A stretch of 64,000 nt of DNA, from the IMG/VR virus record IMGVR_UViG_3300020186_000013, positions 124,001 to 188,000 of that record. One strand, 5' to 3'. Under the pieces are notes generated by a model. That model ran no database searches, was not told where the DNA came from, and worked only from the letters and a program-made list of their open reading frames with translations. The translations under genes were made by a program, and so were the position numbers. Positions within the stretch are counted from its first letter, which is position 1. Every line of letters begins with the position of its first letter. Below, one piece after another: positions 5,009 through 21,772 of the stretch.

Positions 5009-5028
5009 AGGGCGGTCCTCCATAACCG

Positions 5029-6063: not shown

Positions 6064-6542
6064 TGCATGTCCGTCGAGGAACCGATGTTCACGCAGAACT
6101 CCCAGCCGTCGGTCGTCGTGATCACAACCCACAGGACGCGGTTGTTGGCTTGGAGGCGGTCCGAGACGCCGGTGATCGGCGTCTGTTGGAGGGGGTCCTG
6201 GCTGAAAAAATAGTGACCAAAGCCGCCGGGCGACTCATCAGCGTCGTACCGGGCCACGCCGAGTGTCCCGGCGATCGTCGGCTGCACGACAAACAGCTCC
6301 CGCGACAGGGCGTTGCCGTCCGCGTCCGTGACCGGCGTGTTGAAGGCCGCTTCCCGCCGGTTGTAGATGTCGACCGCGAAGCCTCCGACGCCGGGGGAGT
6401 CGGTCCGGCAGATGACGATCTTGTTGAGCAGCACGCGGCTGGGGACCTTGAGGCCAATGATGGCCTTGCCCGAGATGCCGCCGAATTCGGCGTCGCCGAT
6501 GACGATGCCGCCGCGTGGTTCGATTTCGTGGGGGACACCCAT
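6060..6542 (-). CDS. Hypothetical protein (beta-strand-rich, possibly structural)
   Basis: 160 aa; GGAG RBS; coupled to the next gene. Confidence 0.7.
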   Translation of the reverse strand: MGVPHEIEPRGGIVIGDAEFGGISGKAIIGLKVPSRVLLNKIVICRTDSPGVGGFAVDIYNRREAAFNTPVTDADGNALSRELFVVQPTIAGTLGVARYDADESPGGFGHYFFSQDPLQQTPITGVSDRLQANNRVLWVVITTTDGWEFCVNIGSSTDMQ

Positions 6543-6553
6543 TGCACTCTCCG

Positions 6554-9160
6554 TTAGTTACGGGCAGCTTCCTGCACACTCGGGTCGGACGGGTTGGCCA
6601 TGTTACCGAACTGGCCGTCCATACCGCCACCGACTTGCTTCTCCTTGAGGAAGAGGCAGACGTCGCCCATGACCTCGAAGGCGTTGCGGAGGGAGTCTTC
6701 GAGTTCCGGCAAGTCCTGCTTGCCGTAGCGGTCCTCGAACTCCTCTTGGTGCCAGTAGAACATGAACAGGATGCGGCCCAGCTTGTCCAGGGCCTTCATC
6801 AGATCGCCCAGGTAGCGATCGACCAGGCTGTCCTGGCGGACGGCTTTGAGCATCCCCGAGATCATTGCCGTGTCGAAGACCTCTTTCTGGCCCGCCGCCC
6901 CGGCCTCCTGGGCCGTCTGCATCGCCTGCTGGTCGGGCTGGTAGAACGGGTCGTAGATCGTCGGGTCCGTCTTGGCGGACATCAGTTCGGGGGCCTGATG
7001 GAACTCCTCCTGCGGGTAGATCGCGTTGACCTGTCCGTTGCCGACCCGCTCCATGCCTTGCTCGGCCGGCGGGAACGCGGGAGCCCCAGGACCACCCGAC
7101 AACGCAGACTGAGTCGGCCCGCCGAAGCCCTCGGCGTACTTGATGCGGTAGGTCGCGGACCCCTTCTTCTCGGCCTGCCGCATGATGGCACGGGCCGACG
7201 CCTCGTCGGTGCCGTGGTCACGGACCAGGCTGATGAACGCCGCCTTCTTGGTCATCCGGTGCTCGCGGCCATTCGCCTTGACGTACACGTCGCAGCCCCG
7301 GTCGAGGACGCGGATCGCCGCCGTCTTCTCGAACAACATGAGCTGCACGTCGTTGATGTTGCCGGGGTTGATCGGCCGCTCCTCGGTGCCGCTGCCGGGG
7401 TCGGACTCCGACATCGAACAACACGCGAGCAGGCCGTCCTCCTCACGCTTCTTCGGCTTGGGCGGGTCCTTGAGCTTGAAGACCTTGAAGTTCTTGGGCA
7501 CGTTCAGCTCGCCACCGACGGACCGCAGCCCGGACCCTTCACGCGGGTTGATGTGCAACAGGACGTCATACGTCGAGACGTACTCCTCGCCCGACAGCCA
7601 CCGGTTGTTACTGTGCGTCGGCGGCAGCCAGGTCGGGCGATCCTTGCCGTACGAACAGGCGTCCTTGAAGTCGACCCGGTAGGTGTCGTCGTCGACCTTC
7701 TTGCGGACGCGGAACGGCGTGGTGCCCGCCCCGTTCTCGCCAACGGCCAGGTAATGGCCCTCCTGCTCCAGCGTGTCCGAGTCCGATACGCCCTTCCACC
7801 ACTTCTGGAAGTCCGGGCGGTCGGGCTTGGCGTTGGGCTTCACCCACAGGTTGGAGGCGTGGATGTTCACCCAGTTCTTCGGGTCCGACAGGCGGATCAC
7901 GGTGGCCCACTGCTCCCGGCCTCGGTTGGTCTGGGGGTGCATGATGACCAGCATCTCGTCGAACGAGCCCGGCTTCTCTAGGACGTCGAAGACCCCGGTC
8001 TCTCCGGGGTTGGTGAGTTCCATGCGGACCTGGGTGTCGTACACCTGGCTGACGCCCTGGGAGTCCCGCTTGTCCTTGATGAGGACGGTGTCCTTGAGGA
8101 GCTTCTCCCGCTCGTCGGAGTCCAGCTCCTCCTTGTTCTGGGTGAAGCCGCCGGGGGCATCCATGTCGACCTTGTTCTCGGTCGCCCGCTTGCCCATGGC
8201 CCCCGCGAGGGCGTCGTAGACGATGATCTGGAGGGCACCGCTCTTGATCGGGTGCACGGCCGGCAGCGGGTCGGCGACGAGGGACCCGCCAACGCGGCGG
8301 TCGGCCGCGACCTTGGTTCGGACCGGGTCGACCTTCTTGATGAGTGACTTCGCGTCGGCCAACATGTCCTGGCCAAGTTTCAAGAAAAAGTCCCTGCCGT
8401 AGAACTTCTCGAAACCGGCTTTTAGGAGCGGGTGTCGCTGGGTCAACTCGAACGCCCCCTCGGCGAGCTTAATGTTCTCGCCCAAGAACCGCGTCAGAGT
8501 GAGCCGCTCGTCGAGGCCAGCGTGCTTCTGGAAGATCTTGTCGCTCTTGGTCGCGGCGGCACCAGCGAACGCCAAGAACGGGAGAGCCCACTCCTGGATG
8601 CGGGGCCGATAGTGGTCCGAGCCGTACTTCGACGACGTCGGCGGGTGCGACAGGCGATAGATGTCCGGCGGGACACCGCCGAGCTGGTAGGTGTCCTTGG
8701 GCGAAGCCTCGCCCAGGACGTGGGGCTTGCGGGAGATCAGGTAGTTGACCCAGTTCTCCTTCATCGGCACGAAGGCGTCCTGCTTCTTGACGTACAGAAG
8801 CTCGTGGCCTTTCAAGTCGCCGTTCAAAAAGAACACCGGGGCGTAGAGCCACTGGTCGCCGACCTTGAACCCGAAGACGCCCATGGCCTTCGTGTTGTCC
8901 TCGTTCCGGTCGACGAGCTGAAAGCCGATGATGTAGTCGATGAGCCGGGGACTCTTGTCCTTCAGGTAGGCGTAGGCGAGCGAGGAGAAGGCTTGCTCGA
9001 AGCCCGACTCCTGCTCGCCGCCGATGGACGCCTGCTTGATCTTGGTGCGGTCGAGGTCCCGGACGGCCTGACGCAGGGGCGTCTTGGCCGACTTGGACGC
9101 CCAGTACCAGCCCTGGTCCGTGGATCGCTTCTCGAATTTGGTCGTGGCGGTAATGCTCAT
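6554..9160 (-). CDS. Large hypothetical protein, probable virion structural protein
   Basis: About 868 aa from MSITAT (GGAG RBS); strong codon bias; K-x-A motifs (IKQAS, TKVAA, EKTAA, IKYAE). Confidence 0.8.
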   Translation of the reverse strand: MSITATTKFEKRSTDQGWYWASKSAKTPLRQAVRDLDRTKIKQASIGGEQESGFEQAFSSLAYAYLKDKSPRLIDYIIGFQLVDRNEDNTKAMGVFGFKVGDQWLYAPVFFLNGDLKGHELLYVKKQDAFVPMKENWVNYLISRKPHVLGEASPKDTYQLGGVPPDIYRLSHPPTSSKYGSDHYRPRIQEWALPFLAFAGAAATKSDKIFQKHAGLDERLTLTRFLGENIKLAEGAFELTQRHPLLKAGFEKFYGRDFFLKLGQDMLADAKSLIKKVDPVRTKVAADRRVGGSLVADPLPAVHPIKSGALQIIVYDALAGAMGKRATENKVDMDAPGGFTQNKEELDSDEREKLLKDTVLIKDKRDSQGVSQVYDTQVRMELTNPGETGVFDVLEKPGSFDEMLVIMHPQTNRGREQWATVIRLSDPKNWVNIHASNLWVKPNAKPDRPDFQKWWKGVSDSDTLEQEGHYLAVGENGAGTTPFRVRKKVDDDTYRVDFKDACSYGKDRPTWLPPTHSNNRWLSGEEYVSTYDVLLHINPREGSGLRSVGGELNVPKNFKVFKLKDPPKPKKREEDGLLACCSMSESDPGSGTEERPINPGNINDVQLMLFEKTAAIRVLDRGCDVYVKANGREHRMTKKAAFISLVRDHGTDEASARAIMRQAEKKGSATYRIKYAEGFGGPTQSALSGGPGAPAFPPAEQGMERVGNGQVNAIYPQEEFHQAPELMSAKTDPTIYDPFYQPDQQAMQTAQEAGAAGQKEVFDTAMISGMLKAVRQDSLVDRYLGDLMKALDKLGRILFMFYWHQEEFEDRYGKQDLPELEDSLRNAFEVMGDVCLFLKEKQVGGGMDGQFGNMANPSDPSVQEAARN

Positions 9161-9217
9161 GACTCCATCCGTGGATTCGGCTGTGTGTCTGCCATTCCTT
9201 CGGCACCGCACCGATGG

Positions 9218-10510
9218 TCACTGACTTCCGAAGACTCTCTTCGTGACTCGCGAGTAGTCGCCGGACTCTTGGGGGTTCGGCCGCTCGGTGGTCGGAACCG
9301 AGCCGACGGGGTGAACGGTATCGTGGTTCGTAAAGACCCGTTGGTTGGTCTTATTGCCGCCGCTGTGGTCCGCCTTCAGACCCGGCGGTGTGGTGTCCTG
9401 CGGGACCGGCTTCAGCAGGTCGTCGAGGTTCAGCCCAAAGGACTCGGCTTTGATCTGTTGTTGCTTCTGCAACTCGTTCATGTTCGTAGGCGACTGCCCG
9501 TGGAACCGATCAGCCCAGACGTTGTTGGCACCGCCGAGGTTCTGACCGGTCGTCTGAAGTTTCAGCCTGGCATCTTGCATCTTCTTTTGCAACTCGGCCA
9601 TATTGCCGTACTTGCCAGTCTTTAGGCCCGCAACTGCCTCTTCGTGCTGCTGCTTCAGCTGGGCTGCGTACGTCTTCGGGTTGAACCCGGCGTACATCTG
9701 GTCCTTGGTCGGCTGGTACGTACCTGTCTCGACTTGCTGCATCTGATCCGCGAGGTTTTGGATGTGGGCATTGTGGGACTCGGTCAATCGCTGGGCCTCT
9801 TGGTGTGCCCCGGCGTACGTATCAATCGGGTGGTCGCCACGAATGGCGTCGGAGATCTGCCTGCGGCCCGCATACACGCCACCAACAGCCGCAGGGACGC
9901 CGAGACCTACGCCGGCACGACCCAGCCACTTGCCGGACGCGGTCCCCAGCGACGCCGGGGTCGGCATCGTCGGAAGCGAGTTCAGTGAACTCGGAGTCGC
10001 GGCCGGGCTGGGAACCGCCGACCGCGTCACGTTCGGGACCGGCCTTGTCGGTGCGGAGACCGGGCCGGGAACCGCCGACCGCGTCACGTTCGGGACCGGC
10101 CTTGTCGGTGCGGAGACCGGGCCGGTCCCGCCCACCGACGCCCGCGACGACATCGTCGAGGCGGGTGCCGGCACCAGTTTCGGGCCGAGCATACTCTTAA
10201 CGATCGGGGTAGGCGGGATAGGTTGGTTGATCACCCTTCCCCCGACAGCCTGAGTCGGCAGCGTACGCCCCGCAGTCAGCTGCTTCGCCTTGCCGCTGAA
10301 TTTGCCGAATTCCAGCAAGGTATTGCCGGCGTCCCGCAGCGTCCTGGGGTCCAGGCGACCAGCAGCATCTTTCTCCATCAAGACAACGACGGCCGCGATC
10401 TTGGCCATTGACGAGATGGCAGTCAGCGGAGACGGAGAAGCGACCTGGCGATGCCCGCTACGGGCACCGCCGGCCGCTCGTGCCAGTTGTGCGATGACAT
10501 CCATGCCCAT
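9218..10510 (-). CDS. Hypothetical Pro/Gly-rich virion-like protein with an internal duplication
   Basis: GGGAGGGAG RBS before MGMDV; AKIAA and EKDAA motifs; glycine-zipper segment. Confidence 0.65.
   Translation of the reverse strand: MGMDVIAQLARAAGGARSGHRQVASPSPLTAISSMAKIAAVVVLMEKDAAGRLDPRTLRDAGNTLLEFGKFSGKAKQLTAGRTLPTQAVGGRVINQPIPPTPIVKSMLGPKLVPAPASTMSSRASVGGTGPVSAPTRPVPNVTRSAVPGPVSAPTRPVPNVTRSAVPSPAATPSSLNSLPTMPTPASLGTASGKWLGRAGVGLGVPAAVGGVYAGRRQISDAIRGDHPIDTYAGAHQEAQRLTESHNAHIQNLADQMQQVETGTYQPTKDQMYAGFNPKTYAAQLKQQHEEAVAGLKTGKYGNMAELQKKMQDARLKLQTTGQNLGGANNVWADRFHGQSPTNMNELQKQQQIKAESFGLNLDDLLKPVPQDTTPPGLKADHSGGNKTNQRVFTNHDTVHPVGSVPTTERPNPQESGDYSRVTKRVFGSQ
10011..10124. repeat. 57-bp tandem duplication (2 copies), in frame (GPVSAPTRPVPNVTRSAVP x2)
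   Basis: Identical units start at 10011 and 10068. Confidence 0.9.
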
Positions 10511-10564
10511 TGCTGTACTCCCTCCCGCGATTATAACGACAAGTCGTTCCTGCAAACCAGACGA

Positions 10565-13500
10565 TTACCGAAGCAAGCTCAGCCAGTCGGAGCCGCCCTT
10601 CTTCATAACCGCTGGAGTTCGGAACTTTGCAAGTTCCGGATAGCGGTCGAAGATGGCGTCCTTCTTCGGGTCGCCCGTCGAGCGAAAGTTGACCAAGTTA
10701 TTGCAGTCCGCCTGCTGGAGCTGGAACTTCGACGCAAGCTCGGAGAGCTCGTCCTGGAACTTGTCAAAGATCTTGGCCTCGTCCACGGACAGTTGAGGCT
10801 TGACGGGGGTGGCGGGTGCTGCGGGAGCGGCCTTCTGGATCGGCGGGATCGACGGGGAGACGGACTCGTCGCCCTGGTAGCCCGGACCGGTCAACGGGGT
10901 CGTACGCCGGTTCGGGTAGGTGAGGTCGATCGGCCGACGGGTGGACGCGGGCGGCATGCCGAGGTTCTGGTTGTATTGGTCCGCCACCTTGCGGTCCTGC
11001 TCGCGTTTCACCGCAGCGACCATCAGCGTCTTCGCGTAGTCGCCGTACATTGGCCCTTTAACCGGGTCGCGGCGGATGTTCGTAAGTTGGGTCGACGACA
11101 GTTTCGCCGGGTCTCCGTATTCCTTCAGAAATAGGGCCTGTTGGTCCGCCATCCGATTCGCCGAGGCAGCCTCCTCCTCCTTCACCTTGTGTTTTCGCTC
11201 GGTGGCCTCTTGCGAAAACTGGGCTTGGAACTTCTGGTCCAGTGTCTTGTGCCACTCGGGGTCGGTGACGTTCTGGGACCGGATCTCGGCGATGCGTTCT
11301 AGGGCTTTCTGCTTCAGCTCCGGCGGCGTGTCCGGATTATTAGCCCGCCGGTGCAGCAACGCATACTCGCTAGCGGCGTTGTTCTGCTCGTCTTGGGCGA
11401 TGTCGCGACGCTCTTGGATTATCGAGCCACCAGTGTGCCCGAGCAGCCGAGCCTGGTGGGCGGGGTTCAAGAAAAAGTTGGCGGCGTCACTGACAGGTGA
11501 CTCCGACTTGCCGGCGAACAGGTTAAACGCATCTTGCAGGGACTGCTCGTTGCGATTTCTCGTGCCCTCGTAATTGCCGCCGATTGCGTTCCCGATATCC
11601 TCGCCCACATCGTTACCCACCATCAGCGGTCGCACGAACTTGCCGAGGAACCCGGCCACGCCCATACGTCCCGGTGCTGCCGGGACACCGGGAGCCGGAT
11701 TGACCGCCTTAGTCCCGGCCAGGGCGTTGCCGATGCGAGAAAAGAGACTACCCTCGCTGCTGACGGTACGTAGGACACGACCGGTTGCCGCCGCAGTTAG
11801 CCCGCCTGCCGCCAGAGCCGCGGGAGCCGCCTTGGCCACGTCAGCCAAACCGATATTCGGCATCTGCGGCCCGCTGTCGGCTTGATTCTGCCCCGGCATG
11901 ACGCCGCCACCGGGGTGGTAGTATTCTTCCTGCCCGTCGCCGTCCTCGTCGCCGTCACCCGGAACACCGCCCATGCCTACCCCACGCCGGCCTGGGTACT
12001 TCGACTGCATGTTGTGGCCGTGGATCTGCCCGGTCAAGACACCCCAGGCGTTCTGATCGAGGCCGTGACCGATCGCCCCGATGCCGCCCTCTTCGATATG
12101 CTGCTGAGCCTGGGTAGGGTCCATGTGGTGTAGGTAGTTCTGGCCGCGTCGGAACCCGCCGTTGTACACGACCGGGTTCTGCTGCTGAGCCTTCTGCTGA
12201 ATGTTGGCGGTCGTCGCCGTGCCGACGCCACCGACGTAATCGTACGACGGCTTCGGGGCCGCAGGGGAGGCCCCAGTTGAGGCCCCAGTAGGAGCCCCAG
12301 TCGCCGCTGGTGGCGAGACCTGCGGTGCAGGCGGCGGTGCAGGCGGCGGTGCAGGCGTCGTCTTCGGGGCGGTCGACGCGATCGGTTTGGGGGCAGTGGC
12401 CGGGTCGTCGGCCTTCTTCAACCGAGACTTCTTGTCCTCCGACCACTTCATTAGGCTGGCCCAGTTCTTCTTGGGGGCCGGTGCCGGTGCGGGTGCCGCC
12501 GGGGGTTTCGCGGCCACGGGCACGCTCGGTCCCGACAGGTCGGGTTTGCTGGTCGGCTCGGGCTGCCGGACCATACCGACCCGGCCGAAGTCCACGGCCC
12601 GTGACAGACCCGGAACAAAGGACGTGCCCAGCTCGTTCGACGTGCCGCCGCGTTGGGCCGCTTCGAGCAGGCTGGCCTTCTGCCCCGACCCGTACATCTT
12701 GGTCATCCAGTCGGGGTCGTGGGCGACGTTCGCCATGCCCCGGATCATCTCGGCCTGGAACGGCGGCGGCTCGGCGTGGACGGTGACGTTGTCGACACCG
12801 AAGTGCTCGAACTCCTTCAGCATCGACGGCCGGACCTTGGTGCCGATCGTGTGGTGTAAGATCGGCCGTTCTAGGTACTTGCCCAGGGCCTTCTTCGGGT
12901 GAACGGACTCGTGCCCGTCGCGGGGCTCGTAAGTGTGCTCCAGCGTCGAGTACGGGACGACGTCGTCCTGTACATGGTCGCCGTGCTCCTCGGTAAGCCG
13001 GACGTGGTTGATGAGGCCGCGTGACAAGACCTCCAGGTTCCGCCGGTTGACCTTGAGCCCGGCCCCCCGCATGGCGTCACGCATGGCCCCCATGAAGTAC
13101 CGCCGGCCCTCACCGATGCCCTTGTGCTCGATCACGGTCGACGGATTCGGCCACCCGTCGGAGAGTATGTCACCAGCTTCGACCTGGTCTCCTGGTTTCA
13201 CCCTCGGGTCGTACCCACGACCGACATAGTGCTGTTGCCCGTCGATGGTGATGAACTTGCCGCCCGCCGGGGCGTCCTCAATCCGCTGGACGATGCCGTC
13301 GACGGTGGAGTGGGCTGCACCGCCCTTGAACGTCTTGGGGGCCTGGATGAGCTGGTTGACGGCCTCGAAGCCGCTCACGGACTTCTCCTGACCGGCGACG
13401 CCGCCGGAGTGCTTGGCACTCAGCTGGCCTTGCTGGAGTGGCTCGGACAGGGCCTGGGCGGCTTGGAGGCCGATCTGCTCGCCCCGCCCAGGGAGACCGC

Positions 13501-14422
13501 CCCGCTCGCGAACGCCGACGTCACGGGAGTAGACACCGCCATCGGGTGAGCCGCCGACCAACGCACTGCGGACGAGGATCTTGTCGTGGCCGAGGGCCTT
13601 CATGTGTTTGAGGATCTTTGGCGTCAGCATCATGTGCCGCTTGTACGGCCCGACGTCCTGGGCCAGGAGGGCACCCTCACTGTCCATGTCGTCGACATCG
13701 ACTGGGAGGCCCCGGTTGGCAGGGTACTCCTGGTCGTGGTCGAGGGCACTGACCATGAGCCGGTGGCTGATCTGGTTCAACTGCTTGGACAGGAAGCCAG
13801 CGTCCTGGGTGGCGAACTTGGTCGCCATGACGCCCTTGCGGGCACCGTACGTGCCAGCCCAGTATTCGGCCGGAGTGAGCCCCTGGCTGTACGAGCGTAT
13901 CACAGGCAGGGGGATGACGTTGTCGTGGTGGTCGGTGTACAGCATGTCGCTGCCACGGAGCGACGACAGGTTCATCTCGTTGCCGCGACTGCCCGACTGG
14001 ACCTGACGGGCCAGGGGGTTGCCCTCGGCGAGGGACTCGGCGTACACGTCCTTCATCTGCTGATCTTGTGCAGCCCCAGCCTTCCGGATGATGAGTTCGT
14101 GCCGCTGCGTGTCGGTGAGCTTGTCGTCGTTGAGGATCTTGTCGATGTCGCCCTGGAGGCTGACGCCGATCTTGTGGGCCGACTTGGCCTTGAGGAGGTG
14201 TTCAAGGGAAAAGCTGTTGCCGCCCGAGCGGGTGGCGACGTGCCGGCCGACGTCGGCCAGCTTCTTCGAGACTTCCAGATACTTCTCGGGGCTCTTCTCA
14301 GCGATCTCCCGGAGAAGGGCGTTCATGCCCTTCTTGTCCATCACCCGGTCGTAATTGCGGTACTCCTCCGGCAACGCTTCGTTGATGAGGAGCTGACCCA
14401 TCGTTGTGCGGAGGGGAGGCAT
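10565..14422 (-). CDS. Phage RNA polymerase beta' C-terminal subunit (bridge helix, trigger loop) fused to a ~660-aa low-complexity extension
   Basis: TTMGQLL (cf. TTVGR), SGSRGN, SYSQGLTPAEYW...GARKGVMATKFATQDAGFLSKQL (bridge helix) and GEQIGLQAAQALSEPLQQGQLSAKHSGG (trigger loop). RNAP similarity ends near residue 620. Confidence 0.9.
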   Translation of the reverse strand: MPPLRTTMGQLLINEALPEEYRNYDRVMDKKGMNALLREIAEKSPEKYLEVSKKLADVGRHVATRSGGNSFSLEHLLKAKSAHKIGVSLQGDIDKILNDDKLTDTQRHELIIRKAGAAQDQQMKDVYAESLAEGNPLARQVQSGSRGNEMNLSSLRGSDMLYTDHHDNVIPLPVIRSYSQGLTPAEYWAGTYGARKGVMATKFATQDAGFLSKQLNQISHRLMVSALDHDQEYPANRGLPVDVDDMDSEGALLAQDVGPYKRHMMLTPKILKHMKALGHDKILVRSALVGGSPDGGVYSRDVGVRERGGLPGRGEQIGLQAAQALSEPLQQGQLSAKHSGGVAGQEKSVSGFEAVNQLIQAPKTFKGGAAHSTVDGIVQRIEDAPAGGKFITIDGQQHYVGRGYDPRVKPGDQVEAGDILSDGWPNPSTVIEHKGIGEGRRYFMGAMRDAMRGAGLKVNRRNLEVLSRGLINHVRLTEEHGDHVQDDVVPYSTLEHTYEPRDGHESVHPKKALGKYLERPILHHTIGTKVRPSMLKEFEHFGVDNVTVHAEPPPFQAEMIRGMANVAHDPDWMTKMYGSGQKASLLEAAQRGGTSNELGTSFVPGLSRAVDFGRVGMVRQPEPTSKPDLSGPSVPVAAKPPAAPAPAPAPKKNWASLMKWSEDKKSRLKKADDPATAPKPIASTAPKTTPAPPPAPPPAPQVSPPAATGAPTGASTGASPAAPKPSYDYVGGVGTATTANIQQKAQQQNPVVYNGGFRRGQNYLHHMDPTQAQQHIEEGGIGAIGHGLDQNAWGVLTGQIHGHNMQSKYPGRRGVGMGGVPGDGDEDGDGQEEYYHPGGGVMPGQNQADSGPQMPNIGLADVAKAAPAALAAGGLTAAATGRVLRTVSSEGSLFSRIGNALAGTKAVNPAPGVPAAPGRMGVAGFLGKFVRPLMVGNDVGEDIGNAIGGNYEGTRNRNEQSLQDAFNLFAGKSESPVSDAANFFLNPAHQARLLGHTGGSIIQERRDIAQDEQNNAASEYALLHRRANNPDTPPELKQKALERIAEIRSQNVTDPEWHKTLDQKFQAQFSQEATERKHKVKEEEAASANRMADQQALFLKEYGDPAKLSSTQLTNIRRDPVKGPMYGDYAKTLMVAAVKREQDRKVADQYNQNLGMPPASTRRPIDLTYPNRRTTPLTGPGYQGDESVSPSIPPIQKAAPAAPATPVKPQLSVDEAKIFDKFQDELSELASKFQLQQADCNNLVNFRSTGDPKKDAIFDRYPELAKFRTPAVMKKGGSDWLSLLR

Positions 14423-14437
14423 CCGTGCCCCTAAGAT

Positions 14438-14455
14438 CTAGAAACCGGAATCTAG
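14438..14455. promoter_or_regulatory. 18-bp pseudo-palindrome CTAGAAACCGGAATCTAG (recurrent motif)
   Basis: Intergenic, 16 bp upstream of the beta'-C start; near-copies at 24329, 34896 and 57877, and inside genes. Confidence 0.55.
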
Positions 14456-14477
14456 CGGCCCGCAACGTGCGGGCCGC
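14455..14477 (-). terminator. GC hairpin (10-bp stem, 3-nt loop); possible terminator or processing site
   Basis: GCGGCCCGCA-ACG-TGCGGGCCGC just after the 14487 stop; weak U-tract. Confidence 0.4.
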
Positions 14478-14486
14478 ACGAGGTGC

Positions 14487-15389
14487 TTAGCGGCGGTTCT
14501 TCTTGGCCTTCTTGCCGGTCACGGGGAGTGCGGGCAAGGGCGGCTCAATCTTCTTGTCCTCGGGGGGCAGGTCGAACAGGTCGTCAACCTCGGCTGCCTC
14601 AGCCGGCTGCACGGCCGACAGGAAGTTCGACGGCGGGGCCATGACGACCGGTTCCTCGGGTTGGAGGAAGTCGTCCGTGCCGTCATCGACCTCGACAGGG
14701 GGCGGGGCCTCGGGGATCGCCTCTTCTTCGACCTCGTCGGTCTTGAGGAAGTCCATCGGGTCGCCCAGGACCGGCTTTTCGCTGCCCTCGCCGTTGGCGA
14801 CCGGGGCACCGTAGATCTCGTCAGGCGTCCGCGTCTCCTTGAGCACGTGAGCCGGACCTCGACCGAGAATGGCGATGTCCCGGTACTGGTCCTCGGTGAT
14901 CGTCTCGCGGGTCACGAGCATCTCCAGCCGCGTCCGCAGCCGCATGACCAAGGCGTTGTCGCCGAACACGTGGATCGTCACCGGCCCGGTCGGGACCATG
15001 TTGACGGCCGAGTGAACGACCGCGTCGACCTCGCGGGCGTCGGTGAGCATCAGCTGACCAGGCACCCGACTGGGGACCGTGGCCATGCCGTTGACGGGAA
15101 TGTCGCCGATTTTGACGCGGTGCCCGCCGGGACGACCAGTCTTCAGTGCGGCGACCTGCTGAGGCGTCGGCTTGCGGTCCTTCGACCGGTAGTACCGGTC
15201 GGTGTCCTTGTCGTTAAGGTCGGCGAGCGAGGCCAAGTTGGTGGGCGGGCCAGGCATGATCGCCTCGCCCGGCTTCATGGTTGTGCTGTCAACGGGCTGG
15301 CCGGCGAACACCGACGGAGTGCCCGATCGGTAGTACCGGTCAGCGTTGTTGGTGTCGAACCGGTTGCGAAGGTCGTCCTGCTGACTCAT
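14487..15389 (-). CDS. Hypothetical protein with an acidic C-terminus
   Basis: AGGAG RBS before MSQQDD; internal repeat DRYYRS x2. Confidence 0.75.
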   Translation of the reverse strand: MSQQDDLRNRFDTNNADRYYRSGTPSVFAGQPVDSTTMKPGEAIMPGPPTNLASLADLNDKDTDRYYRSKDRKPTPQQVAALKTGRPGGHRVKIGDIPVNGMATVPSRVPGQLMLTDAREVDAVVHSAVNMVPTGPVTIHVFGDNALVMRLRTRLEMLVTRETITEDQYRDIAILGRGPAHVLKETRTPDEIYGAPVANGEGSEKPVLGDPMDFLKTDEVEEEAIPEAPPPVEVDDGTDDFLQPEEPVVMAPPSNFLSAVQPAEAAEVDDLFDLPPEDKKIEPPLPALPVTGKKAKKNRR

Positions 15390-15390
15390 G

Positions 15391-15672
15391 TCATTCTCCT
15401 GGCTTCGGCCCCGCAATCAGTCGGGCACCGGGCGGTGGTTTGGGAAGTTCCAACCGGTCGCAGACGACCGTCTCGCCGATGCCGAGGTTCCTCAGCATGC
15501 GGTTGAAGTCGTCCTGGCCGACGATGGAGATGGCCTGGCTCCGGCCACCTCCGTACTCCGCAGCGACGCCGATCGGGGTGCCGGTGTCCTGGCGGATCAG
15601 GATCTGATTGACCTGCAAGACCAGTGGCCTGCTGTTGCCGATCCCGTCCTTGAGAATCAACTCTACGATCAC
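15391..15672 (-). CDS. Hypothetical protein
   Basis: 93 aa; fills the gap between neighbours; GTG start. Confidence 0.65.
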   Translation of the reverse strand: MIVELILKDGIGNSRPLVLQVNQILIRQDTGTPIGVAAEYGGGRSQAISIVGQDDFNRMLRNLGIGETVVCDRLELPKPPPGARLIAGPKPGE

Positions 15673-15683
15673 GGGTCACCCCA

Positions 15684-16436
15684 CTACGCCGCCGGACGCC
15701 GACGAAGGCTGGCGATCATGGCGGCTTTGTTCATGGTCTCTTCCAGGCCCTTGTGGGAGTACGCCACGCCCGCGTCGGCAGCCGCCTTGCCGCCGCCTCC
15801 GGGTGGTGCACCGCCCATGTCGGGCTGCCCGCCCATCGGGGGCATGCCGCCGGGGGCACCCATGGCCGAGTCCTGCTGCCCGCCGGACTGCTGCTTCGCG
15901 GCCATCTGGGTCAGATCGGTCGGCGTGGCGATCATCTCGCTGGCCGGGATCTTGACACCGAGGGCGTCCGCAATGCGGGCGATCATCTTCGACATCTGCA
16001 TGATGGCGACGTTGACGTCGATCTTGGGCTTGATCTGCCCGGCCATGTTCGAGCCAGACTGAGCCGACCCGCCCTGGACGGCCTGGAGGATCTGGTCCAT
16101 CTTGGCCGTCATCGCCGGGTCGCCGCCACCCCCGCCGCCCGGAGGCGGCATCGGAGGCATGCCCATCATGGACGGGTCCATCGGAGGAGCACCGCCGCCG
16201 GACGGGTCACCGCCGGGAGGCGGGCCACCCATCATAGACGGGTCCATCGGAGGGGCACCGCCGCCCATGGACGGATCGCCGCCAGGAGGAGGGGCACCAC
16301 CGCCGCCGGTCATGGAGGGGTCACCACCGGGCACGAACGCGAGTTTGGTGAAGTTCGCCGACATCTTGCGGCGGGCTTCCTTCACCAACTCGGGGTTACA
16401 CAGGTGGTCGCCGTAAGGCGTCATCAATTGGCTCAT
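15684..16436 (-). CDS. Pro/Gly/Met-rich, probably disordered protein
   Basis: 250 aa; repeated GGDPSM and GAPPMDPSMMG units; TKLAF motif. Confidence 0.75.
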   Translation of the reverse strand: MSQLMTPYGDHLCNPELVKEARRKMSANFTKLAFVPGGDPSMTGGGGAPPPGGDPSMGGGAPPMDPSMMGGPPPGGDPSGGGAPPMDPSMMGMPPMPPPGGGGGGDPAMTAKMDQILQAVQGGSAQSGSNMAGQIKPKIDVNVAIMQMSKMIARIADALGVKIPASEMIATPTDLTQMAAKQQSGGQQDSAMGAPGGMPPMGGQPDMGGAPPGGGGKAAADAGVAYSHKGLEETMNKAAMIASLRRRPAA

Positions 16437-16506
16437 GGAAATCCCTTTCCCGCAGAGGATACCGTATCGAGTTCAAGTTTACTGCAACGCCACGCCACAG
16501 AGAAGA

Positions 16507-18255
16507 CTACTCCATGATGTGCACGGGAGTGTCCTCGGTGATCTCGCCCTGGTGGAGGGCCGCGAGGGCGTCCTGCTTGTTCCGGAAGACGCGGGGCCGA
16601 CCCTTCTCCTTCTTGGCCGTGCTGGCGTGGTGCAAACCGCCCAGGTACTCCTGGCCGGGCACGTGCACGGGGCTCTTGAAGTCGGCCGGGGATAGAAGGT
16701 TTTTCGACGGCAGCATCCGCTCCAGGGCCTCCTTCTTGGCCTCCTCGGAGGTCGGCACGTGGAACTGCATGGCGTCACCGTCGAAGTCAGCGTTGAACCC
16801 CTTGACGATCAGCGGGGACACCTGCATCGTGTCGCCCTTCACCAGCTTGGGGCGAAACGCCATGATACCGAATCGGTGGAGAACGGGTGCCCGATTGATG
16901 AACACCGGACGGTCTTCCATCTCCTCCTGGAGGATCGACCGGGCCTTGTCGGTCTTATCCTTGACGTGCTGGAGGGCCTGGCTGATCGGCATCCCCTGGC
17001 GGTGCATCCGCCGGACGAGGAACTTGGAGTACACCTCGAACGCCTTCGACTCGGGGATGCCTACCGTGTCCATGTCGTAGTCCGGGTTCGGGCTGATCAC
17101 CGCCCGGCCGACGTTGTCGACAGTCGAGGACAGGAGCTTCCTTTGCACCGTGCCGAACTTGGGGGACGTGCCGAAGATGCTCTTCAAGATGCCCTTGACG
17201 TTCTTGTCTTGGCTCTTCTGGGTGATCGGATCGCCCAGGCCGGTGACCGCCTTGAAGGCGTGGTACACGGCCAACCGTTCGGCCCCCGCGTTGTCGTGGC
17301 CGACCATGCCCTTCATCTCGCCGAGGTTCTTGTTGGCCTCGATCAGCTCCTTGTAGAGGTAGTTCGGGTCCGATACCAGCGGGATGCCCGACTGCCCCAT
17401 CATCGACACCGGGCGGAACGCAGGAGGCAGGACGGGGGCGTGATCGAGCATCCAGTCCTTGGGGTGCAGGCCGAGGCTCTGGGCACTCTTCAGGTAGCCG
17501 AGCTTGCGAACCGCCTCGTCCCGCTTACTACGACTCGACGACTGAACCTGGGTCCTAGCGGTCGCCAGCTCCTTGGTCAGGTTGATGTCCTCCAACGCGG
17601 CCTTGAGGGCCTTCGGGCCGGTGCCGTGCCCGCCAATCGTCTCAGTGCCCGCCAACACGCCCTCGAACTGCTTGGCCGTCAACCCGAGGATTCGCCGCAT
17701 CGGCTCCTCCATGACAGGGTTGGGCATGGGCTCGTCGAACTTAATCTTCGACCACTGCTTGCCGCCGTGCCCGCCGGTCATCGCCGGGTCGAACAGACCC
17801 CCGGCCACTGGCTTCAAGTCCCGGTCGAAGTTGACCGTCTCGCCGTGCGTAAGGACGCGGTTGCCGCCCAAGGCGTCCACGTCCTTGTTGGTCATGGCCA
17901 TGATGTGAGTGCGAGGGCCATCCCGGACGACATTGATCCCGGACGCCTTGAGCTGGTGGTGGAACTTGTCGTACACCATCGGGGTCTTCACAGCACTGGG
18001 CATATGTCCCTGCATGAACTGCAACCAGTATTGCTCGTTCCGCTGACCCCGGATACTGCCCACGTCCCGGAGATTCTCGACGGCCCCGTGGGACAGGAGG
18101 GCATTCACGTCGAGCATCGAGATCCGCTTGGAGTTCGACACCAGGACGTTGTTGGCGAAGTACAGGTGGATGCCGTCGACAGTGACGTCGTACACGTCGA
18201 CCAGCCCGTTCGCCTTCGTGACGCCCCGGTAAGGGCCGATGTACGCCACCTTCAT
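16507..18255 (-). CDS. C-intein (41 aa) + RNAP beta C-terminal tail + beta' N-terminal catalytic half
   Basis: VYDVTVDGIHLYFANNVLVSN|S (intein blocks F/G), SKRISMLDVNALLSHGA (beta GQRFGEMEVWALEAYGA equivalent), GGLFDP, PVLPPAFRP, GRAVISP, NRAPVLHRFGIMAF, catalytic FNADFDGDAM. Confidence 0.95.
   Translation of the reverse strand: MKVAYIGPYRGVTKANGLVDVYDVTVDGIHLYFANNVLVSNSKRISMLDVNALLSHGAVENLRDVGSIRGQRNEQYWLQFMQGHMPSAVKTPMVYDKFHHQLKASGINVVRDGPRTHIMAMTNKDVDALGGNRVLTHGETVNFDRDLKPVAGGLFDPAMTGGHGGKQWSKIKFDEPMPNPVMEEPMRRILGLTAKQFEGVLAGTETIGGHGTGPKALKAALEDINLTKELATARTQVQSSSRSKRDEAVRKLGYLKSAQSLGLHPKDWMLDHAPVLPPAFRPVSMMGQSGIPLVSDPNYLYKELIEANKNLGEMKGMVGHDNAGAERLAVYHAFKAVTGLGDPITQKSQDKNVKGILKSIFGTSPKFGTVQRKLLSSTVDNVGRAVISPNPDYDMDTVGIPESKAFEVYSKFLVRRMHRQGMPISQALQHVKDKTDKARSILQEEMEDRPVFINRAPVLHRFGIMAFRPKLVKGDTMQVSPLIVKGFNADFDGDAMQFHVPTSEEAKKEALERMLPSKNLLSPADFKSPVHVPGQEYLGGLHHASTAKKEKGRPRVFRNKQDALAALHQGEITEDTPVHIME
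18133..18255 (-). mobile_element. Split intein, C-terminal fragment (IntC, 41 aa; ends Ser-Asn, Ser+1)
   Basis: Block F VYDVTV..H.YFAN and block G VLVSN; own ATG with a GAGGA RBS. Confidence 0.9.
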
Positions 18256-18656
18256 CGCTGCTTCCTCGTCCAGAAGTCGTGTAGGCCGGACAGGGCTTGG
18301 CCGGTCATGCCACGCAGCTTCATCATCAAACTCCGCTGCATGGCCCGACGGGGGTCGATGCTCTGGGGCGTGGCGGCTTCGACCGGGGCCGGCTTGGCTG
18401 CCGGCTTGGCCATCGGCTTACCCGGCCTCGCCCGCCGCCGGGGCGTGGGCTTCTCGGAAACCTCGCCGAACCTTTGGAACTTGACCGGGGCGAACGGTAA
18501 GTCGACCGGCGGACGGTTGCCCGCCGTCATGAGCGTCTGCTGGCCTGCCCCGAGGGGTGAGCCCGACTGCCCCTCGCCGGGGTCGGCCGGGTCGACGGCA
18601 GCCGTCTTCATGCGGAGAGCTGCCGCCTTGGCCGCGAGAATGTTGAGCCCGTCCAT
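18252..18656 (-). CDS. 134-aa low-complexity protein inserted between the two intein halves
   Basis: ATG at 18656 overlaps the beta stop (TGATG); its own TGA overlaps the IntC ATG (ATGA); AKAAA and MKTAA motifs; no endonuclease motif. Confidence 0.7.
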   Translation of the reverse strand: MDGLNILAAKAAALRMKTAAVDPADPGEGQSGSPLGAGQQTLMTAGNRPPVDLPFAPVKFQRFGEVSEKPTPRRRARPGKPMAKPAAKPAPVEAATPQSIDPRRAMQRSLMMKLRGMTGQALSGLHDFWTRKQR

Positions 18657-21600
18657 CACGCCCCCTGTAGTTCGTCGCCGACGACCAGGTCGCCGGCCAG
18701 TTTCCTCGATCCGTCCGCCAGGATGATCTCGTGGTTCCTGGTGACCTCCAAAACACGGCCAGTGTCGGTCACGACCTCCATGATGTCGATCGGCTTGACG
18801 GCGAACGTGAACCAGTCGACGACCGGCATCCACATGAGCTTGCCGCCCGTGGCTTTCTTGGTCAGGACGTTGATGGCCAGTTTCTTCTGCACGACCTCGG
18901 CGATCGACACCAGGCCGCTCGACTCGGTATGGAGGAAAACCCGCTCGGTGAAGCAGCCGCTCTCGCCGCCCTTGCTGGGCGTCTCGTCCATGCCGTACCC
19001 GCCGCCGCCACGACCCTGGCCCTTGCTTTCGGCCGTGTGGTGCAACTTCATAAAGAACCGGTTGCCCGTGTGGACGCCGGGGATCTTGGACCCCGTGGCC
19101 GGATCGACGATGTCCTCGGTCGAAGTCAGGCCGTGCTTCCGCAGCTCGTCAATCGTGAACTGGTTTAAGTCCTTGATGCTACCGAAGTCTTCCAGCTTGT
19201 ACCTCTTGCCTGTCAACGCGGCAATCTTGCCTAGCTGGGCCTCGACCATCTGGGCTGGATTGGTACGACTGATCACACCGAGGGGGTTGAGCAGGATCTC
19301 GTAGGGCTTACCGTTGCGGTCGTGCGGCATCTGGTGGTCGGGGACGACGGCACTGATGACGCCCTTGTCGCCGTACCGGCCGGAGAGTTTGTCACCCACC
19401 TGCATCTGTGAAGAAGACTTAACGAGGACGACAGGCCCGTCCTTGCCCCGTACGACGTCGGTAACGACCCCAGAATCATGATGCTGCCACACAACGGATT
19501 GGTCATTGTGTCCCGCCTGCTTCTTCTTGTGGACCTTGTTGTCTGCCCGGTCGTTCTCGCGTGCGGCCAAAATGAGAGGTTGGCCGTGCTCGATTTTGGT
19601 GCCAGGTTTGATGATGCCGTCGTCGTCGAGGGACGCCAGCGTCTCCCGGTCAAACTTGCCGGGGAACAAACTGATGAAGTTCTTCTTCCCCATCTTGTGC
19701 TTGTCGTCAACCATCACCTCGTGGTGGTACATGTGGTCGCTCGACAGCCGCTTCGCCGCCGTCTCCGAGATGACCTGAGCGTCCTCGAAGTTGTACCCCT
19801 TCCACGGCGTGTACGCCACGCGGAAGTTCGCACCGAGGGCCGCAGCCCCGGTGTGGTCGGTGTAGTTGCTCTTGGCCAAGAGCTGGCCCGCTTTGAATGT
19901 GTCCCCTGGCTTCAGTGCAGGAGTATTGTGGATGTACGTCTTCCGGTTGAAGGGAAAGTTGTGATAGAGATCGACACGATCTTTGCGTCCGTCTGCGTAT
20001 TGGACGTCCATCCCTCCGTCACTGATCCCAAGGACCCGACCCCCGTGTTCACCAGCATGCACGGCCCCGAGATGACGTCCGTATTCTTCTTCAAAAGATC
20101 TCGCTCCACCCGATCCTGGAAGGCCCGATTGAACCAGGGGTGCTTCTGCGTTCGTAAGTGGTAGTGCTTGAGTGAGCATCCGAGACGCCATAGCGACCCG
20201 TTGCCCTTTGACCATGCTCTTGAGCGGGACCATGTTGCCCAGGGGCGAGAAGGCATTCTCAAAGTGGGGCAACTCGAATTGGACTTCGTTGCGTGGGACA
20301 TATGCGATCTTGCCTCCCTTCATGACCGGGATACGTTTCGCGGTCGACGCCAGTCCGCCGGGGAACGCGATCGCCGCCTCGGCCAGGTCCTGGGGGCTCT
20401 TCCAACCAAGCCTACCCGTCCTAACGTCCCGGAACTCGGAGTACATGCGACCGTCGCCGCCTTTTCGTGCCCCCCGAGCCATGTTCAGGTCGATGCCAAC
20501 GCGGAAACTCTCGGGCGTCCGCAAGGGGTCCATGAACCCCATATGACCGGGCTGCACGCTCCGGGCGTCGTCGGGAACCGACTCCATCGACGGGATGCCG
20601 CCTTCACCCAGGCGGGTGATCCGGCTCTGCTTGTCGAACACCTCGGCAGGGTTGATCTCTTCGATCGCCTGGCCCAGGCCAGAGCCCAGGAGCGTCTGCT
20701 CGATTTGCCGGGTCAGTGCCCCTGACGGCATGTCTTTCAGGTGTCCCTTCATGCTCATCTTGTGAAACAGCATCTTCTGGACGCGACCGTGGTCGCGGGC
20801 CACCCGCTCGGAGATCAGGTCCTCGGGACCCAGCACGGTCTGGAAGTGCGGGGCGTCCCGGTCGTCGACTTCGTCCTCGCCCCGACTGACGGCCAAGAGC
20901 TTCTTGGTTGCCGCCAGGATGGTGTCCTTATTCATCCGGGTGTGGGGGTGTTTGAGCGTGTACTTGGTGACCTCGGGGTCGACCTCCATGTCCTCGAACT
21001 TCTTGACCAGGGCCAGGCGACGGTGCTGCTCGTCTGGGTTGTCCCGGTCGACCTTACTCAGAATCTTGTTCTGGAGCTTGGTCAGTACCCCGCCCTCAGA
21101 CTTGAGCATATTGCTCTGGTACAGCTCGGACCCCCAGTGCTCATACAGCTCTCGGTCGGTCGTACCCATCGCCTTCAGGAGCGGCAGCAACGGCATCTCA
21201 GCTTGGCCGATCTTGATCTTGAACACGCCCTTGGCCGGATCGAGCAGGTAACGGTGGGAGACGCCCTTGCCGGGCAGGATGTTGGCGTGGGACTCCAGCT
21301 CACCGTTGTCCTTGCGACGGGTGAAGACACCGGGCATGAGCCGCTGCTGGTGGTTCAAAGTGTAATCGTTACCGCCGTGGACAAACGTGCCCATGTTCGT
21401 CAAGTGAGGGACGCGGGCGATAACCTGCTCACGGCGATCGACGAGAGCACCCGTGGCGTTGTCGGTCAACTCCCACGTGCCCTTCATGCGGCGGGCCAGG
21501 GTGCCGCCAGTCAGGAGGGCTTGCTTCCGTTGGTCGATACTGAAGTGGTCAGGGTCGATGTACTCCGGACTGTGGAGCCGGAGAGTGTGCCGGACGTTGG

Positions 21601-21772
21601 AAACCGGCTGAATGCCCTGAGCCGCCTTCAGGACGTTGCCGTAGATGTTCTGCCGCGTCTTGACGTGGTCGCCAAAGTCGCGGATGTGGGACTCCGGAAG
21701 CACGGGCGGCGGTGGCGGCGTGCTGCCGGGCAGGAGGGACGGACCCTTATCGGGGATGAGACTGTCAGGCAT
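18656..21772 (-). CDS. Phage RNA polymerase beta subunit (lacks its C-terminal tail) + N-intein
   Basis: RITRLGEGG, DPLRTPES, MASRMLTQALP, GYNFEDA, GDKLSGRYGDKGVI, LNPLGVISRTN and MKLHH are all beta signature equivalents; residues 940-1038 are intein. Confidence 0.95.
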   Translation of the reverse strand: MPDSLIPDKGPSLLPGSTPPPPPVLPESHIRDFGDHVKTRQNIYGNVLKAAQGIQPVSNVRHTLRLHSPEYIDPDHFSIDQRKQALLTGGTLARRMKGTWELTDNATGALVDRREQVIARVPHLTNMGTFVHGGNDYTLNHQQRLMPGVFTRRKDNGELESHANILPGKGVSHRYLLDPAKGVFKIKIGQAEMPLLPLLKAMGTTDRELYEHWGSELYQSNMLKSEGGVLTKLQNKILSKVDRDNPDEQHRRLALVKKFEDMEVDPEVTKYTLKHPHTRMNKDTILAATKKLLAVSRGEDEVDDRDAPHFQTVLGPEDLISERVARDHGRVQKMLFHKMSMKGHLKDMPSGALTRQIEQTLLGSGLGQAIEEINPAEVFDKQSRITRLGEGGIPSMESVPDDARSVQPGHMGFMDPLRTPESFRVGIDLNMARGARKGGDGRMYSEFRDVRTGRLGWKSPQDLAEAAIAFPGGLASTAKRIPVMKGGKIAYVPRNEVQFELPHFENAFSPLGNMVPLKSMVKGQRVAMASRMLTQALPLTNAEAPLVQSGLPGSGGARSFEEEYGRHLGAVHAGEHGGRVLGISDGGMDVQYADGRKDRVDLYHNFPFNRKTYIHNTPALKPGDTFKAGQLLAKSNYTDHTGAAALGANFRVAYTPWKGYNFEDAQVISETAAKRLSSDHMYHHEVMVDDKHKMGKKNFISLFPGKFDRETLASLDDDGIIKPGTKIEHGQPLILAARENDRADNKVHKKKQAGHNDQSVVWQHHDSGVVTDVVRGKDGPVVLVKSSSQMQVGDKLSGRYGDKGVISAVVPDHQMPHDRNGKPYEILLNPLGVISRTNPAQMVEAQLGKIAALTGKRYKLEDFGSIKDLNQFTIDELRKHGLTSTEDIVDPATGSKIPGVHTGNRFFMKLHHTAESKGQGRGGGGYGMDETPSKGGESGCFTERVFLHTESSGLVSIAEVVQKKLAINVLTKKATGGKLMWMPVVDWFTFAVKPIDIMEVVTDTGRVLEVTRNHEIILADGSRKLAGDLVVGDELQGA
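18659..18955 (-). mobile_element. Split intein, N-terminal fragment (IntN, 99 aa; Cys1)
   Basis: CFTERVFL (block A), G.VSIAEV, LEVTRNHEI (block B TxxH), ends AGDLVVGDEL followed shortly by the stop. Confidence 0.9.

Follow-up and report, generated by a model that had tools for sequence, protein, structure and literature searches.

A bacterial-type RNA polymerase beta' C-terminal subunit with a long, variable tail in an uncultured phage

Gene content of the locus

This report deals with a gene found at 10565..14422 on the - strand of a 64,000-nucleotide stretch of DNA from an uncultured phage. The whole stretch, called the window below, comprises bases 124001-188000 of a 208,145-bp IMG/VR virus record (IMGVR_UViG_3300020186_000013). 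The gene encodes the C-terminal portion of the beta' subunit of a multisubunit RNA polymerase (RNAP), designated beta'C, which is prolonged by a tail of several hundred amino acids (aa). The record has a CheckV completeness of 93% and a G+C content of ~63%, and nearly all of its genes are on the - strand. The public runs that contain window DNA are microbial-mat metagenomes. The gene, its segments and the genes of its predicted partners are given below with their window coordinates, their strand and, in brackets, the basis of the assignment.

10565..14422, - strand: beta' C-terminal subunit and tail, whole gene, 1285 aa (open reading frame (ORF) and translation).
12563..14422, - strand: RNAP core part, aa 1-620, with the TTxG start, the bridge helix YGARKGVMATKFATQDAGFLSKQLNQ and the trigger-loop region QLSAKHSGGVAG (Pfam, phmmer, AlphaFold2 (AF2), ratio of non-synonymous to synonymous substitution rates (dN/dS)).
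12515..12562, - strand: aa 621-636, PEPTSKPDLSGPSVPV, opening segment of the tail, docked on the core as an added strand in the prediction (AF2).
12434..12472, - strand: motif 1, aa 651-663, KKNWASLMKWSED, the window version of [KR]..FF[SG]G[LR]FK[LMV][SG].
12404..12421, - strand: LKKADD, aa 668-673, proposed cleavage site (present, not conserved).
12026..12160, - strand: module 2, aa 755-799, GGFRRGQNYLHHMDP...GIGAIGHGLDQNAWGVLTGQ, conserved and Gly-rich (iterated hidden Markov model (HMM) search).
10568..12004, - strand: distal tail, aa 807-1285, a Gly/Ala/Pro-rich disordered stretch followed by polar helices (AF2).
16507..18255, - strand: split-intein C half (aa 1-41), C-terminal end of beta and N-terminal half of beta' (beta'N), 582 aa (Pfam Rpb1_2 and Rpb1_1; phmmer; VLVSN|S junction).
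18656..21772, - strand: beta subunit with a C-terminal split-intein N half, aa 940-1038, at 18659-18955 (Pfam Rpb2_6).

Core and tail are one real, intact gene. An earlier reading of the letters alone, here the sequence-only reading, had described a separate gene for the C-terminal half of beta' with an extension of ~660 aa, and this description stands. The sequence AGGGG is located 8 nt upstream of the ATG. The ORF is intact, and the G+C content at third codon positions (GC3), computed specifically for the beta'C frame, is 0.66-0.92 all through the tail. Contigs from four other runs contain no insertion or deletion in the ORF. The whole ORF is spanned without gaps by contigs of two runs (both may be the source sample), and the core/tail junction is spanned by a contig of a third run. 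The possibility that the extension is a separate gene in the reads, raised by the same reading, is thus answered in favour of the fusion, no stop or frameshift being seen at the junction. An identical protein is recorded from another contig, of 136,870 bp. Tailed beta'C ORFs are also found on independent contigs (L003, L005/L006, L007/L008 and, by its gene table, the contig of P0047).

RNA polymerase core and the break in beta'

The core matches Pfam RNA_pol_Rpb1_5 (PF04998) at aa 181-361 (E 3.9e-18, above the family cut-off), and aa 4-491 align with residues 659-1161 of solved bacterial beta' chains (phmmer, E 8.5e-39). In the printed phmmer alignment, the bridge-helix motif GARKG...T(A/Q)D(S/A)G(Y/F)L(T/S)(R/K) and the trigger-loop motif (F/K)H(T/S)GGVAG each align with their beta' counterpart. 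An AF2 model of aa 1-710, built with a 68-sequence alignment, gives predicted local distance difference test (pLDDT) values >90 for most of aa 1-570. A low-confidence stretch, aa 572-618, probably needs other subunits. The core is 93% identical to that of L003, the nearest relative, with a dN/dS of 0.06. All three of the membership tests applied, each made on sequence, place it as the C-terminal module of a bacterial-type multisubunit RNAP beta'. The beta'C proteins of tail-less relatives end at a position equivalent to ~aa 620-623; the extension is therefore 665 aa long (621-1285).

Since beta'C begins with MPPLRTTMGQLLINEALP, beta' is broken just before the TTxG motif, as the sequence-only reading had noticed, and beta'N is found in the ORF at 16507..18255. 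The location of the break was obtained by comparing the offsets of two alignments (with an actinobacterial beta' and with a cyanobacterial gamma). From these alignments, we infer that it lies ~35-65 residues upstream of the cyanobacterial gamma/beta' split (the C-terminus of gamma) and that ~26 residues are absent at the break. Cyanobacteria had been said to split beta' at a nearby position, which agrees with this estimate.

Partner subunits and split intein

The beta ORF has an Rpb2_6 match (E 9.5e-55), and no second Rpb2_6 match was found in the 208-kb record (93% complete). The last 99 aa of this ORF (CFTERV...TRNHEIIL) are the N half of an intein whose best solved matches are DnaE split-intein N fragments (E 0.002). 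The C half corresponds to the first 41 aa of the beta'N ORF (window 18133-18255, - strand; MKVAY...VLVSN|S). The C-terminal end of beta resumes after the VLVSN|S junction. The features of a naturally split (DnaE-like) intein were found: the N half starts with Cys and carries a TxxH block, and the short C half ends with N, which is followed by Ser. The two halves are separated by a spacer of 400 bp. The beta'N ORF bears the NADFDGD catalytic loop (FNADFDGDAMQFHVP) and matches solved beta' and cyanobacterial gamma chains, gamma residues 186-549 being covered (phmmer). The intein-flanked halves of beta-beta'N were searched separately, not as a joined sequence.

Relatives encode beta-beta'N contiguously, with or without inteins (Arash; D69; L002, which has LAGLIDADG inteins; the contig of P0047). 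The likely partner of beta'C is therefore a trans-spliced beta-beta'N fusion, as predicted from sequence. The involvement of protein splicing, proposed by the sequence-only reading, is supported by a beta that ends in the N half of a split intein and a beta'N ORF that begins with the C half.

Two side observations concern inteins. An ORF lies between the intein halves (window 18252-18833, - strand) and is 65% identical to L003 5691-6086; L007 has at the same place (3491-5404) a 637-aa ORF without Pfam match. The ORF between the halves might encode a free-standing endonuclease. LAGLIDADG/Hint inteins are found within the beta'C core of some relatives (P0019, P0028, P0095, P0105, P0117; proteins only); inteins thus often target the RNAP genes in this clade.

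No alpha gene was found in a search of the whole genome. A sigma-70-like gene is located outside the window (genome 60105-60626, - strand; L011, L014), with matches to Sigma70 region 2 (30.6 bits) and region 4 (38 bits), both above cut-off. The region 2 match contains a TAA, which lies upstream of the start codon (ATG) of a 137-aa ORF that bears region 4; this gene may be interrupted, two-part or mis-started. The earlier statement that neither alpha nor sigma is recognisable in the window thus holds for alpha, even genome-wide, and needs amending for sigma, given the gene outside the window and a sub-threshold match inside it. This match, a side observation, is Sigma70_r4-like and located at window 35849-35980 (- strand), in a 130-aa open frame (20.7 bits, cut-off 24.1). 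The product could be a small helix-turn-helix protein or a minimal sigma-like protein.

Three ORFs separate beta'N from beta'C.

15684..16436, - strand: intervening gene 1, 250 aa, Gly/Pro/Met-rich (ORF; C-terminal part conserved in 16/77 loci).
15391..15672, - strand: intervening gene 2, 93 aa (ORF; same position in 29/77 loci).
14487..15416, - strand: intervening gene 3, 309 aa, with an acidic and Pro-rich C-terminus (ORF; homologue in 4/77 loci).

None of the three has a Pfam or PHROG match. The sequence-only reading had counted three unrelated genes here. The number is right; the word unrelated is not, at least two of them being conserved at that position in relatives. Genes 1 and 2 may be RNAP-associated rather than unrelated insertions.

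Anatomy of the tail

The Pro/Ala-rich linker, LKKADD and the Gly-rich low-complexity stretches listed by the sequence-only reading are all present in the translation. Directly after the core comes a short Pro-rich segment that is predicted to fold back onto it: aa 621-630 have a pLDDT of 81 with a strand at 625 (AF2), and residues beyond 636 are not docked. The PEPG..P-type segment of aa 621-636 recurs in tailed relatives.

Two further elements of the proximal tail are conserved. Motif 1 lies 25-55 aa past the core in relatives, for example as KKGFFSGLFKMSEDD or TFFGGRFKLA. The strict regular expression matches 38/121 tails, within the first 140 aa, and has 0 matches in 141 kaa (thousand amino acids) elsewhere in the same proteins; looser variants are seen in ~35-40 further tails (counted by eye, not by script). 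No docking of motif 1 in cis onto beta'C is predicted (pLDDT <50, AF2), only aa 621-636 being docked. Motif 1 may resemble an amphipathic membrane helix of the MinD kind or a peptide that binds the clamp; a phage clamp was looked for and none was detectable. Module 2 (45-60 aa) is found in 52/121 tails by iterated HMM search, with the consensus GY.PG...DDP...FV.GGG...GFGG.FGAVTRFGSLLD.NAV..LT.G. LKKADD is replaced by LKEAND in the nearest relative, P0003, and is absent from P0004 and P0005.

Homologues of the tail were sought in several ways. Against Pfam and PHROGs there was no match, apart from a single sub-threshold Ku_C (E 0.06). A word search for stand-alone tail homologues of 355-1130 aa gave none. 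HMMER searches with the tail among 1.84 billion representatives returned only two further tailed beta'C proteins, and an ESM Atlas feature search returned viral hypothetical clusters at 0.78-0.83, below the meaningful level. No paralogue of the tail exists in the genome. The resemblance to neighbouring proteins noticed by the sequence-only reading is thus one of composition (shared with the 250-aa and 445-aa proteins) and does not extend to homology. The label virion-type, taken as a statement of homology, is not supported: the tail has no homologue outside tailed beta'C proteins.

Distribution and evolution of the tail

The core (aa 1-620) was searched among proteins of 707-2249 aa, a search to which tail-less relatives are invisible. 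At least 591 proteins match it at E<=1e-60. In widely differing forms, the tail is present in hundreds of related uncultured phages. The best 120 of these 591 are 59-70% identical to the core and all tailed (total length 714-2107 aa). In the resulting family of 121 proteins, the window's own included, the median tail is 649 aa beyond the core; tail length in relatives spans ~100 to 1500 aa.

An IMG/VR survey included the tail-less forms: 77 loci were fetched with the core profile and the ORF was read to its stop, 76 being counted. Tail length is bimodal in these 76 loci (<=40 aa in 59, >200 aa in 15). Nearly all long tails belong to loci with a core >=60% identical to that of the window; loci with a core <=58% identical stop at the core, the exceptions being L031 (764 aa) and L074 (102 aa). 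In tail-less loci, a gene like the 885-aa gene found downstream of beta'C in the window comes directly after beta'C or after a small low-complexity or variable ORF; for this reason the tail is placed in a hypervariable slot and considered derived in one subclade. Sequence comparison indicates that it is derived and belongs to a single large subclade, whose members are uncultured phages known from contigs no longer than ~250 kb.

Two candidate explanations of tail origin or loss were discarded. A fusion with the downstream 186-aa ORF of the tail-less L002 is unsupported (hhalign probability 0.3%). Short tails were not used as a sign of fission, the 714-aa P0039 seeming to stop at the end of its contig.

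The rate of change differs along the tail. Against L003, dN/dS is 0.09 in the module 2 region (aa 723-806), 0.20 in the linker with motif 1 and 0.34-0.57 in the distal 480 aa, the last value carrying saturation and alignment uncertainty. Identity to the nearest relative is 23-43% in the distal tail, versus 93% in the core. Motif 1 and module 2 are thus shown, at the level of sequence divergence, to be under purifying selection. At tail aa 916-1168 (window 10921-11676), all of the 12 single-nucleotide polymorphisms (SNPs) between strains are non-synonymous (12/12), 11 of them in one contig of run X6; contigs of this run have no differences over the covered parts of the core. This pattern, which comes from few sites at low depth and from contigs, where rare variants are hidden, suggests diversifying selection on the distal tail. 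Mutagenesis of the diversity-generating retroelement (DGR) type was rejected as the source of the SNPs, since the substitutions show no preference for adenine.

The tails of one related subclade carry shuffled small enzyme domains instead (acylphosphatase-like, P-loop kinase, DUF4269 and DUF5661).

Comparison with known systems

Phage multisubunit RNAPs are known mainly from phiKZ/AR9-type phages. The window RNAP shares with these a phage-encoded multisubunit enzyme and a beta' in two polypeptides, one form being packaged there. The sequence-only reading had placed it with them. This assignment fails on the gene content: phiKZ/AR9 phages have two paralogous RNAP sets, a beta that is split too and no sigma factors (PMC7824862), whereas the window phage has one set and a sigma-like gene, and its beta, instead of being split off, would be joined to beta'N after the predicted splicing. 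Membership of the phiKZ/AR9 type was thus rejected both on the two sets and on the sigma-less, split-beta organisation. The window enzyme is also far closer to bacterial beta' (E 1e-39 to 1e-52), and its best PHROG matches are other families (phrog_25354, phrog_24349). The beta'C module of the non-virion RNAP of the phiKZ/AR9 group has a unique C-terminal domain (PMC7824862).

The closest likeness is with Salmonella phage Arash (gp206/gp216) and Vibrio phage D69 (VPHD69_0261/VPHD69_0264), whose subunits were compared with those of the window. All have the gene order beta-beta'N, few small genes, beta'C, gp218-like large protein and head genes; the split point in beta' is the same and identity across the subunits is 24-32%. 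Arash also has a sigma-like protein and no reported alpha. The differences are that beta'C of Arash and D69 (606-609 aa, 24-26% identity) ends at the core and is tail-less, that their beta-beta'N is one contiguous ORF whereas that of the window is interrupted by a split intein, and that Arash has a helicase gene after its beta'C.

Polymerases joined to large non-catalytic regions are found elsewhere among late virion genes. N4 gp50, a virion RNAP, requires its C-terminal 1,400 aa for encapsidation (PMC5512222), and the P23-45 virion RNAP is reported to be fused to the tape measure protein (bioRxiv 10.1101/2022.12.01.518664). Together with crAss-like gp66, these resemble the window gene in joining a polymerase to packaging or injection regions. 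They differ in being single-polypeptide polymerases of other types, with no sequence similarity to the window tail. Polyvalent proteins (Iyer et al. 2017) adjoin late virion genes (PMC5512222). The likeness consists of a variable modular C-terminal region next to predicted virion genes, with domain-bearing tails in one related subclade; it stops at domain content, the window tail having no recognisable domain where polyvalent proteins have several. No MuF, metallopeptidase or other polyvalent hallmark domain was found in the 38 relatives scanned.

In cyanobacteria and plastids (gamma/RpoC1 and beta'/RpoC2), beta' is likewise divided into a catalytic N half and a bridge-helix/trigger-loop half. 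The phage break differs in that it is not at the same site, that three genes separate the halves and that beta'N is also fused to beta. No description of a tailed beta'C was found in the literature searched.

Possible roles of the tail

The gene context, as read from sequence, favours a link between the RNAP and the virion. Homologues of Arash gp222 (E 8e-33), of the major capsid protein (E 2e-36) and, weakly, of gp218 lie downstream of beta'C, which is ~13 kb upstream of the major capsid gene. A PHROG scan of ten head-region proteins gave no matches, the capsid gene being identified only through Arash. In Arash particles analysed by liquid chromatography coupled to mass spectrometry (LC-MS), gp206 (beta-beta'N) ranks first by spectral count and gp216 (beta'C) ranks fifth; gp218 was detected too, in a preparation for which 116 'virion' proteins are listed (PMC10585845). 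The tight spacing of beta'C and the genes after it, the single RNAP set, the sigma-like gene outside the window and the lack of a detected alpha also count towards such a link, and the N4 and P23-45 enzymes and polyvalent proteins are precedents. By analogy, virion packaging of the window RNAP is plausible.

The reading preferred here, with a confidence that falls a little short of even, is that of a virion-delivered bacterial-type RNAP whose beta'C tail would act as an arm for delivery and cargo, conserved and used for docking near the core, variable farther out. Three components would make up the polymerase: the trans-spliced beta-beta'N fusion, beta'C and the phage sigma-like factor. Its synthesis would coincide with that of the head proteins, and it would then be packaged and enter the cell along with the DNA. 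The conserved proximal elements of the tail would serve as docking signals for packaging or ejection, and the variable distal part would, once inside, contact partners that differ between hosts or strains. The function of such an arm would be comparable to that of the terminal domains of the N4 virion RNAP and of polyvalent proteins.

Several observations weigh against virion delivery by the tail. Homology of the tail to known virion, ejection or targeting proteins was sought and none was found. A motif search did not find motif 1 in neighbouring proteins, in other proteins of the genome or in the 77 related loci; it is therefore no targeting or cleavage signal common to several proteins. AF2 could not predict a fold for the tail (mean pLDDT 37, with helices at ~aa 1000-1155 and 1214-1283), and no convincing transmembrane segment is present (maximum Kyte-Doolittle 1.28). 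The 12/12 non-synonymous SNPs have a neutral probability of ~0.03 and come from low-depth contigs of one run. Enzyme domains are found in the tails of one subclade only, 28/32 of the other long tails sampled being Pfam-empty. The Arash preparation may include carry-over, because 116 proteins are listed, and Arash, the packaging analogue, is tail-less. Lastly, early reliance on the host RNAP and later use of the phage enzyme, with no packaging needed, would be open to a phage that has a sigma-like gene.

A bolder version of the delivery reading is possible but doubtful. In this version, a large uncultured clade would deliver a bacterial-type RNAP (trans-spliced or fused beta-beta'N, beta'C and a phage sigma-like factor) with its DNA, and the C-terminus of beta'C would be a hypervariable, modular cargo arm. 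The FFxGxFK motif and the GFGG...RFG...LT.G module would be a packaging or ejection signal, and diversifying selection would act on the distal part, an effector or host-interaction module that can be exchanged; the whole would be a polyvalent RNA polymerase.

The best-surviving alternative, though rather unlikely, is that the tail is a flexible C-terminal arm of beta' that recruits the sigma-like factor, host factors or RNA/nucleotide enzymes in the cell, packaging being unneeded. The C-terminal domain (CTD) of Pol II offers a loose parallel. Such an arm would be expected where the tail is, at the C-terminus of beta' on a Pro-rich linker; the two short conserved elements in a disordered chain are what docking motifs would look like, P-loop kinase and acylphosphatase-like domains are fused there in relatives, and the genome has a sigma-like gene and no detected alpha. 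The parallel is weakened by a search for repeats of the CTD kind in the tail, which found none. The distal part changes fast and mostly at the amino-acid level, which one expects of a conflict interface more than of housekeeping recruitment, beta'C has head-gene homologues around it, and tail-less relatives evidently transcribe without a tail.

The sequence-only reading had proposed a polyprotein matured by both splicing and proteolysis. As far as proteolysis is concerned, a head-maturation protease would cut the linker at or near LKKADD, yielding an RNAP subunit of ~620-670 aa and an internal virion protein of ~600 aa. A long exposed Pro/Ala linker does join two functionally distinct parts, motif 1 could be a recognition site from its position 25-55 aa past the core in many relatives, tail-less relatives often have separate small low-complexity ORFs at the same place, and multidomain phage proteins are known to undergo processing (PMC5512222). 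Cleavage at LKKADD is nevertheless not upheld, the motif being altered in the nearest relative and missing from the next. Motif 1, unlike a site used on several head proteins, is in no other protein of the genome or of the 77 loci. Head-maturation proteases of the S78, S77 and ClpP types were not detected in the genome (a weak negative, given the divergence of this genome), and the ORF downstream of beta'C in the tail-less L002 has no homology to the tail. Proteolytic processing of beta'C is, on balance, improbable.

Still less probable is a tail without function, either recently fused, decaying or a neutral low-complexity read-through of the variable slot. The distal 480 aa would suit this explanation, being disordered, very divergent and devoid of family matches, as would the existence of tail-less relatives and the span of tail lengths (~100 to 1500 aa). 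It is opposed by the long open frames kept in the best 120 of the 591 matching proteins, by the coding-type GC3, by the strong purifying selection on motif 1 and module 2, and by a dN/dS <1 even distally.

That a sequencing error, in assembly or gene calling, joined two adjacent genes was rejected as next to impossible: nothing supports it, the question arising only from a junction DNA that is low-complexity, G+C-rich and also matched by short foreign contigs, and it conflicts both with the gap-free contigs of two runs across the ORF and of a third across the junction and with the recurrence of the core-tail fusion in divergent relatives of other samples and sources.

The window RNAP represents a group that is different from the phiKZ/AR9 type and much larger, uncultured, and with an enzyme close to the bacterial one. 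In this group, beta'C has come to bear long tails that change rapidly. Should the tail serve packaging or delivery, it would give a sequence handle, with the two short conserved elements as candidates, on the capsid loading and release of a ~300-kDa cellular-type polymerase, and the idea of polyvalent proteins would then extend to RNAPs of the multisubunit kind. Should it serve recruitment, the bacterial world would have in it a counterpart of the polymerase C-terminal domain. Under either reading, direct tests can be made of the two conserved elements and of the excess of amino-acid changes between strains.

Neighbouring genes and candidate control elements

The following features flank beta'C.

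9218..10555, - strand: variable 445-aa gene between beta'C and the 885-aa gene (translation).
6554..9211, - strand: conserved 885-aa gene (weak homologue of Arash gp218, which is annotated structural; blastp E 6e-6).
14455..14477, - strand: perfect 9-bp G+C hairpin with a 5-nt loop, GCGGCCCGC-ACGTT-GCGGGCCGC, after the stop of the 309-aa gene and abutting the 17-nt motif (read directly).
14438..14454, - strand: TAGATTCCGGTTTCTAG, a near-palindrome of 17 nt with its end 16 nt upstream of the beta'C ATG.

Only 6-11 nt lie between each of beta'C, the 445-aa gene, the 885-aa gene and the gene that comes next. In the 445-aa protein, GPVSAPTRPVPNVTRSAVP is repeated in tandem (19 aa, two copies); a hydrophobic stretch rich in Gly and helices rich in Q are also present. 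Identity to the L003 counterpart is only 38%, and the 77 loci contain no homologue. Its gene is part of the same hypervariable slot as the tail. The 885-aa gene is a core partner of the RNAP-head block: tblastn matches are found in 68/77 loci, usually right after beta'C. Its product has no Pfam or PHROG match.

Without a T run behind it, the hairpin is not called a terminator; a transcript may nevertheless begin or end there, ahead of beta'C. A scan of window 4000-23500 for promoter and terminator consensus sequences gave nothing above chance. The 17-nt motif (TAGATTCNGGTTTYTAG) has 6 copies in the window versus 0.17 expected, and 0/100 shuffles reach 6. The copies include those at 14438-14454, 24329-24345 and 57877-57893 (- strand) and weaker ones; 21 are found in the genome (G000). 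Other copies end 7-12 nt upstream of three further gene starts. The motif is a candidate operator, promoter or 5' untranslated region (5'-UTR) element.

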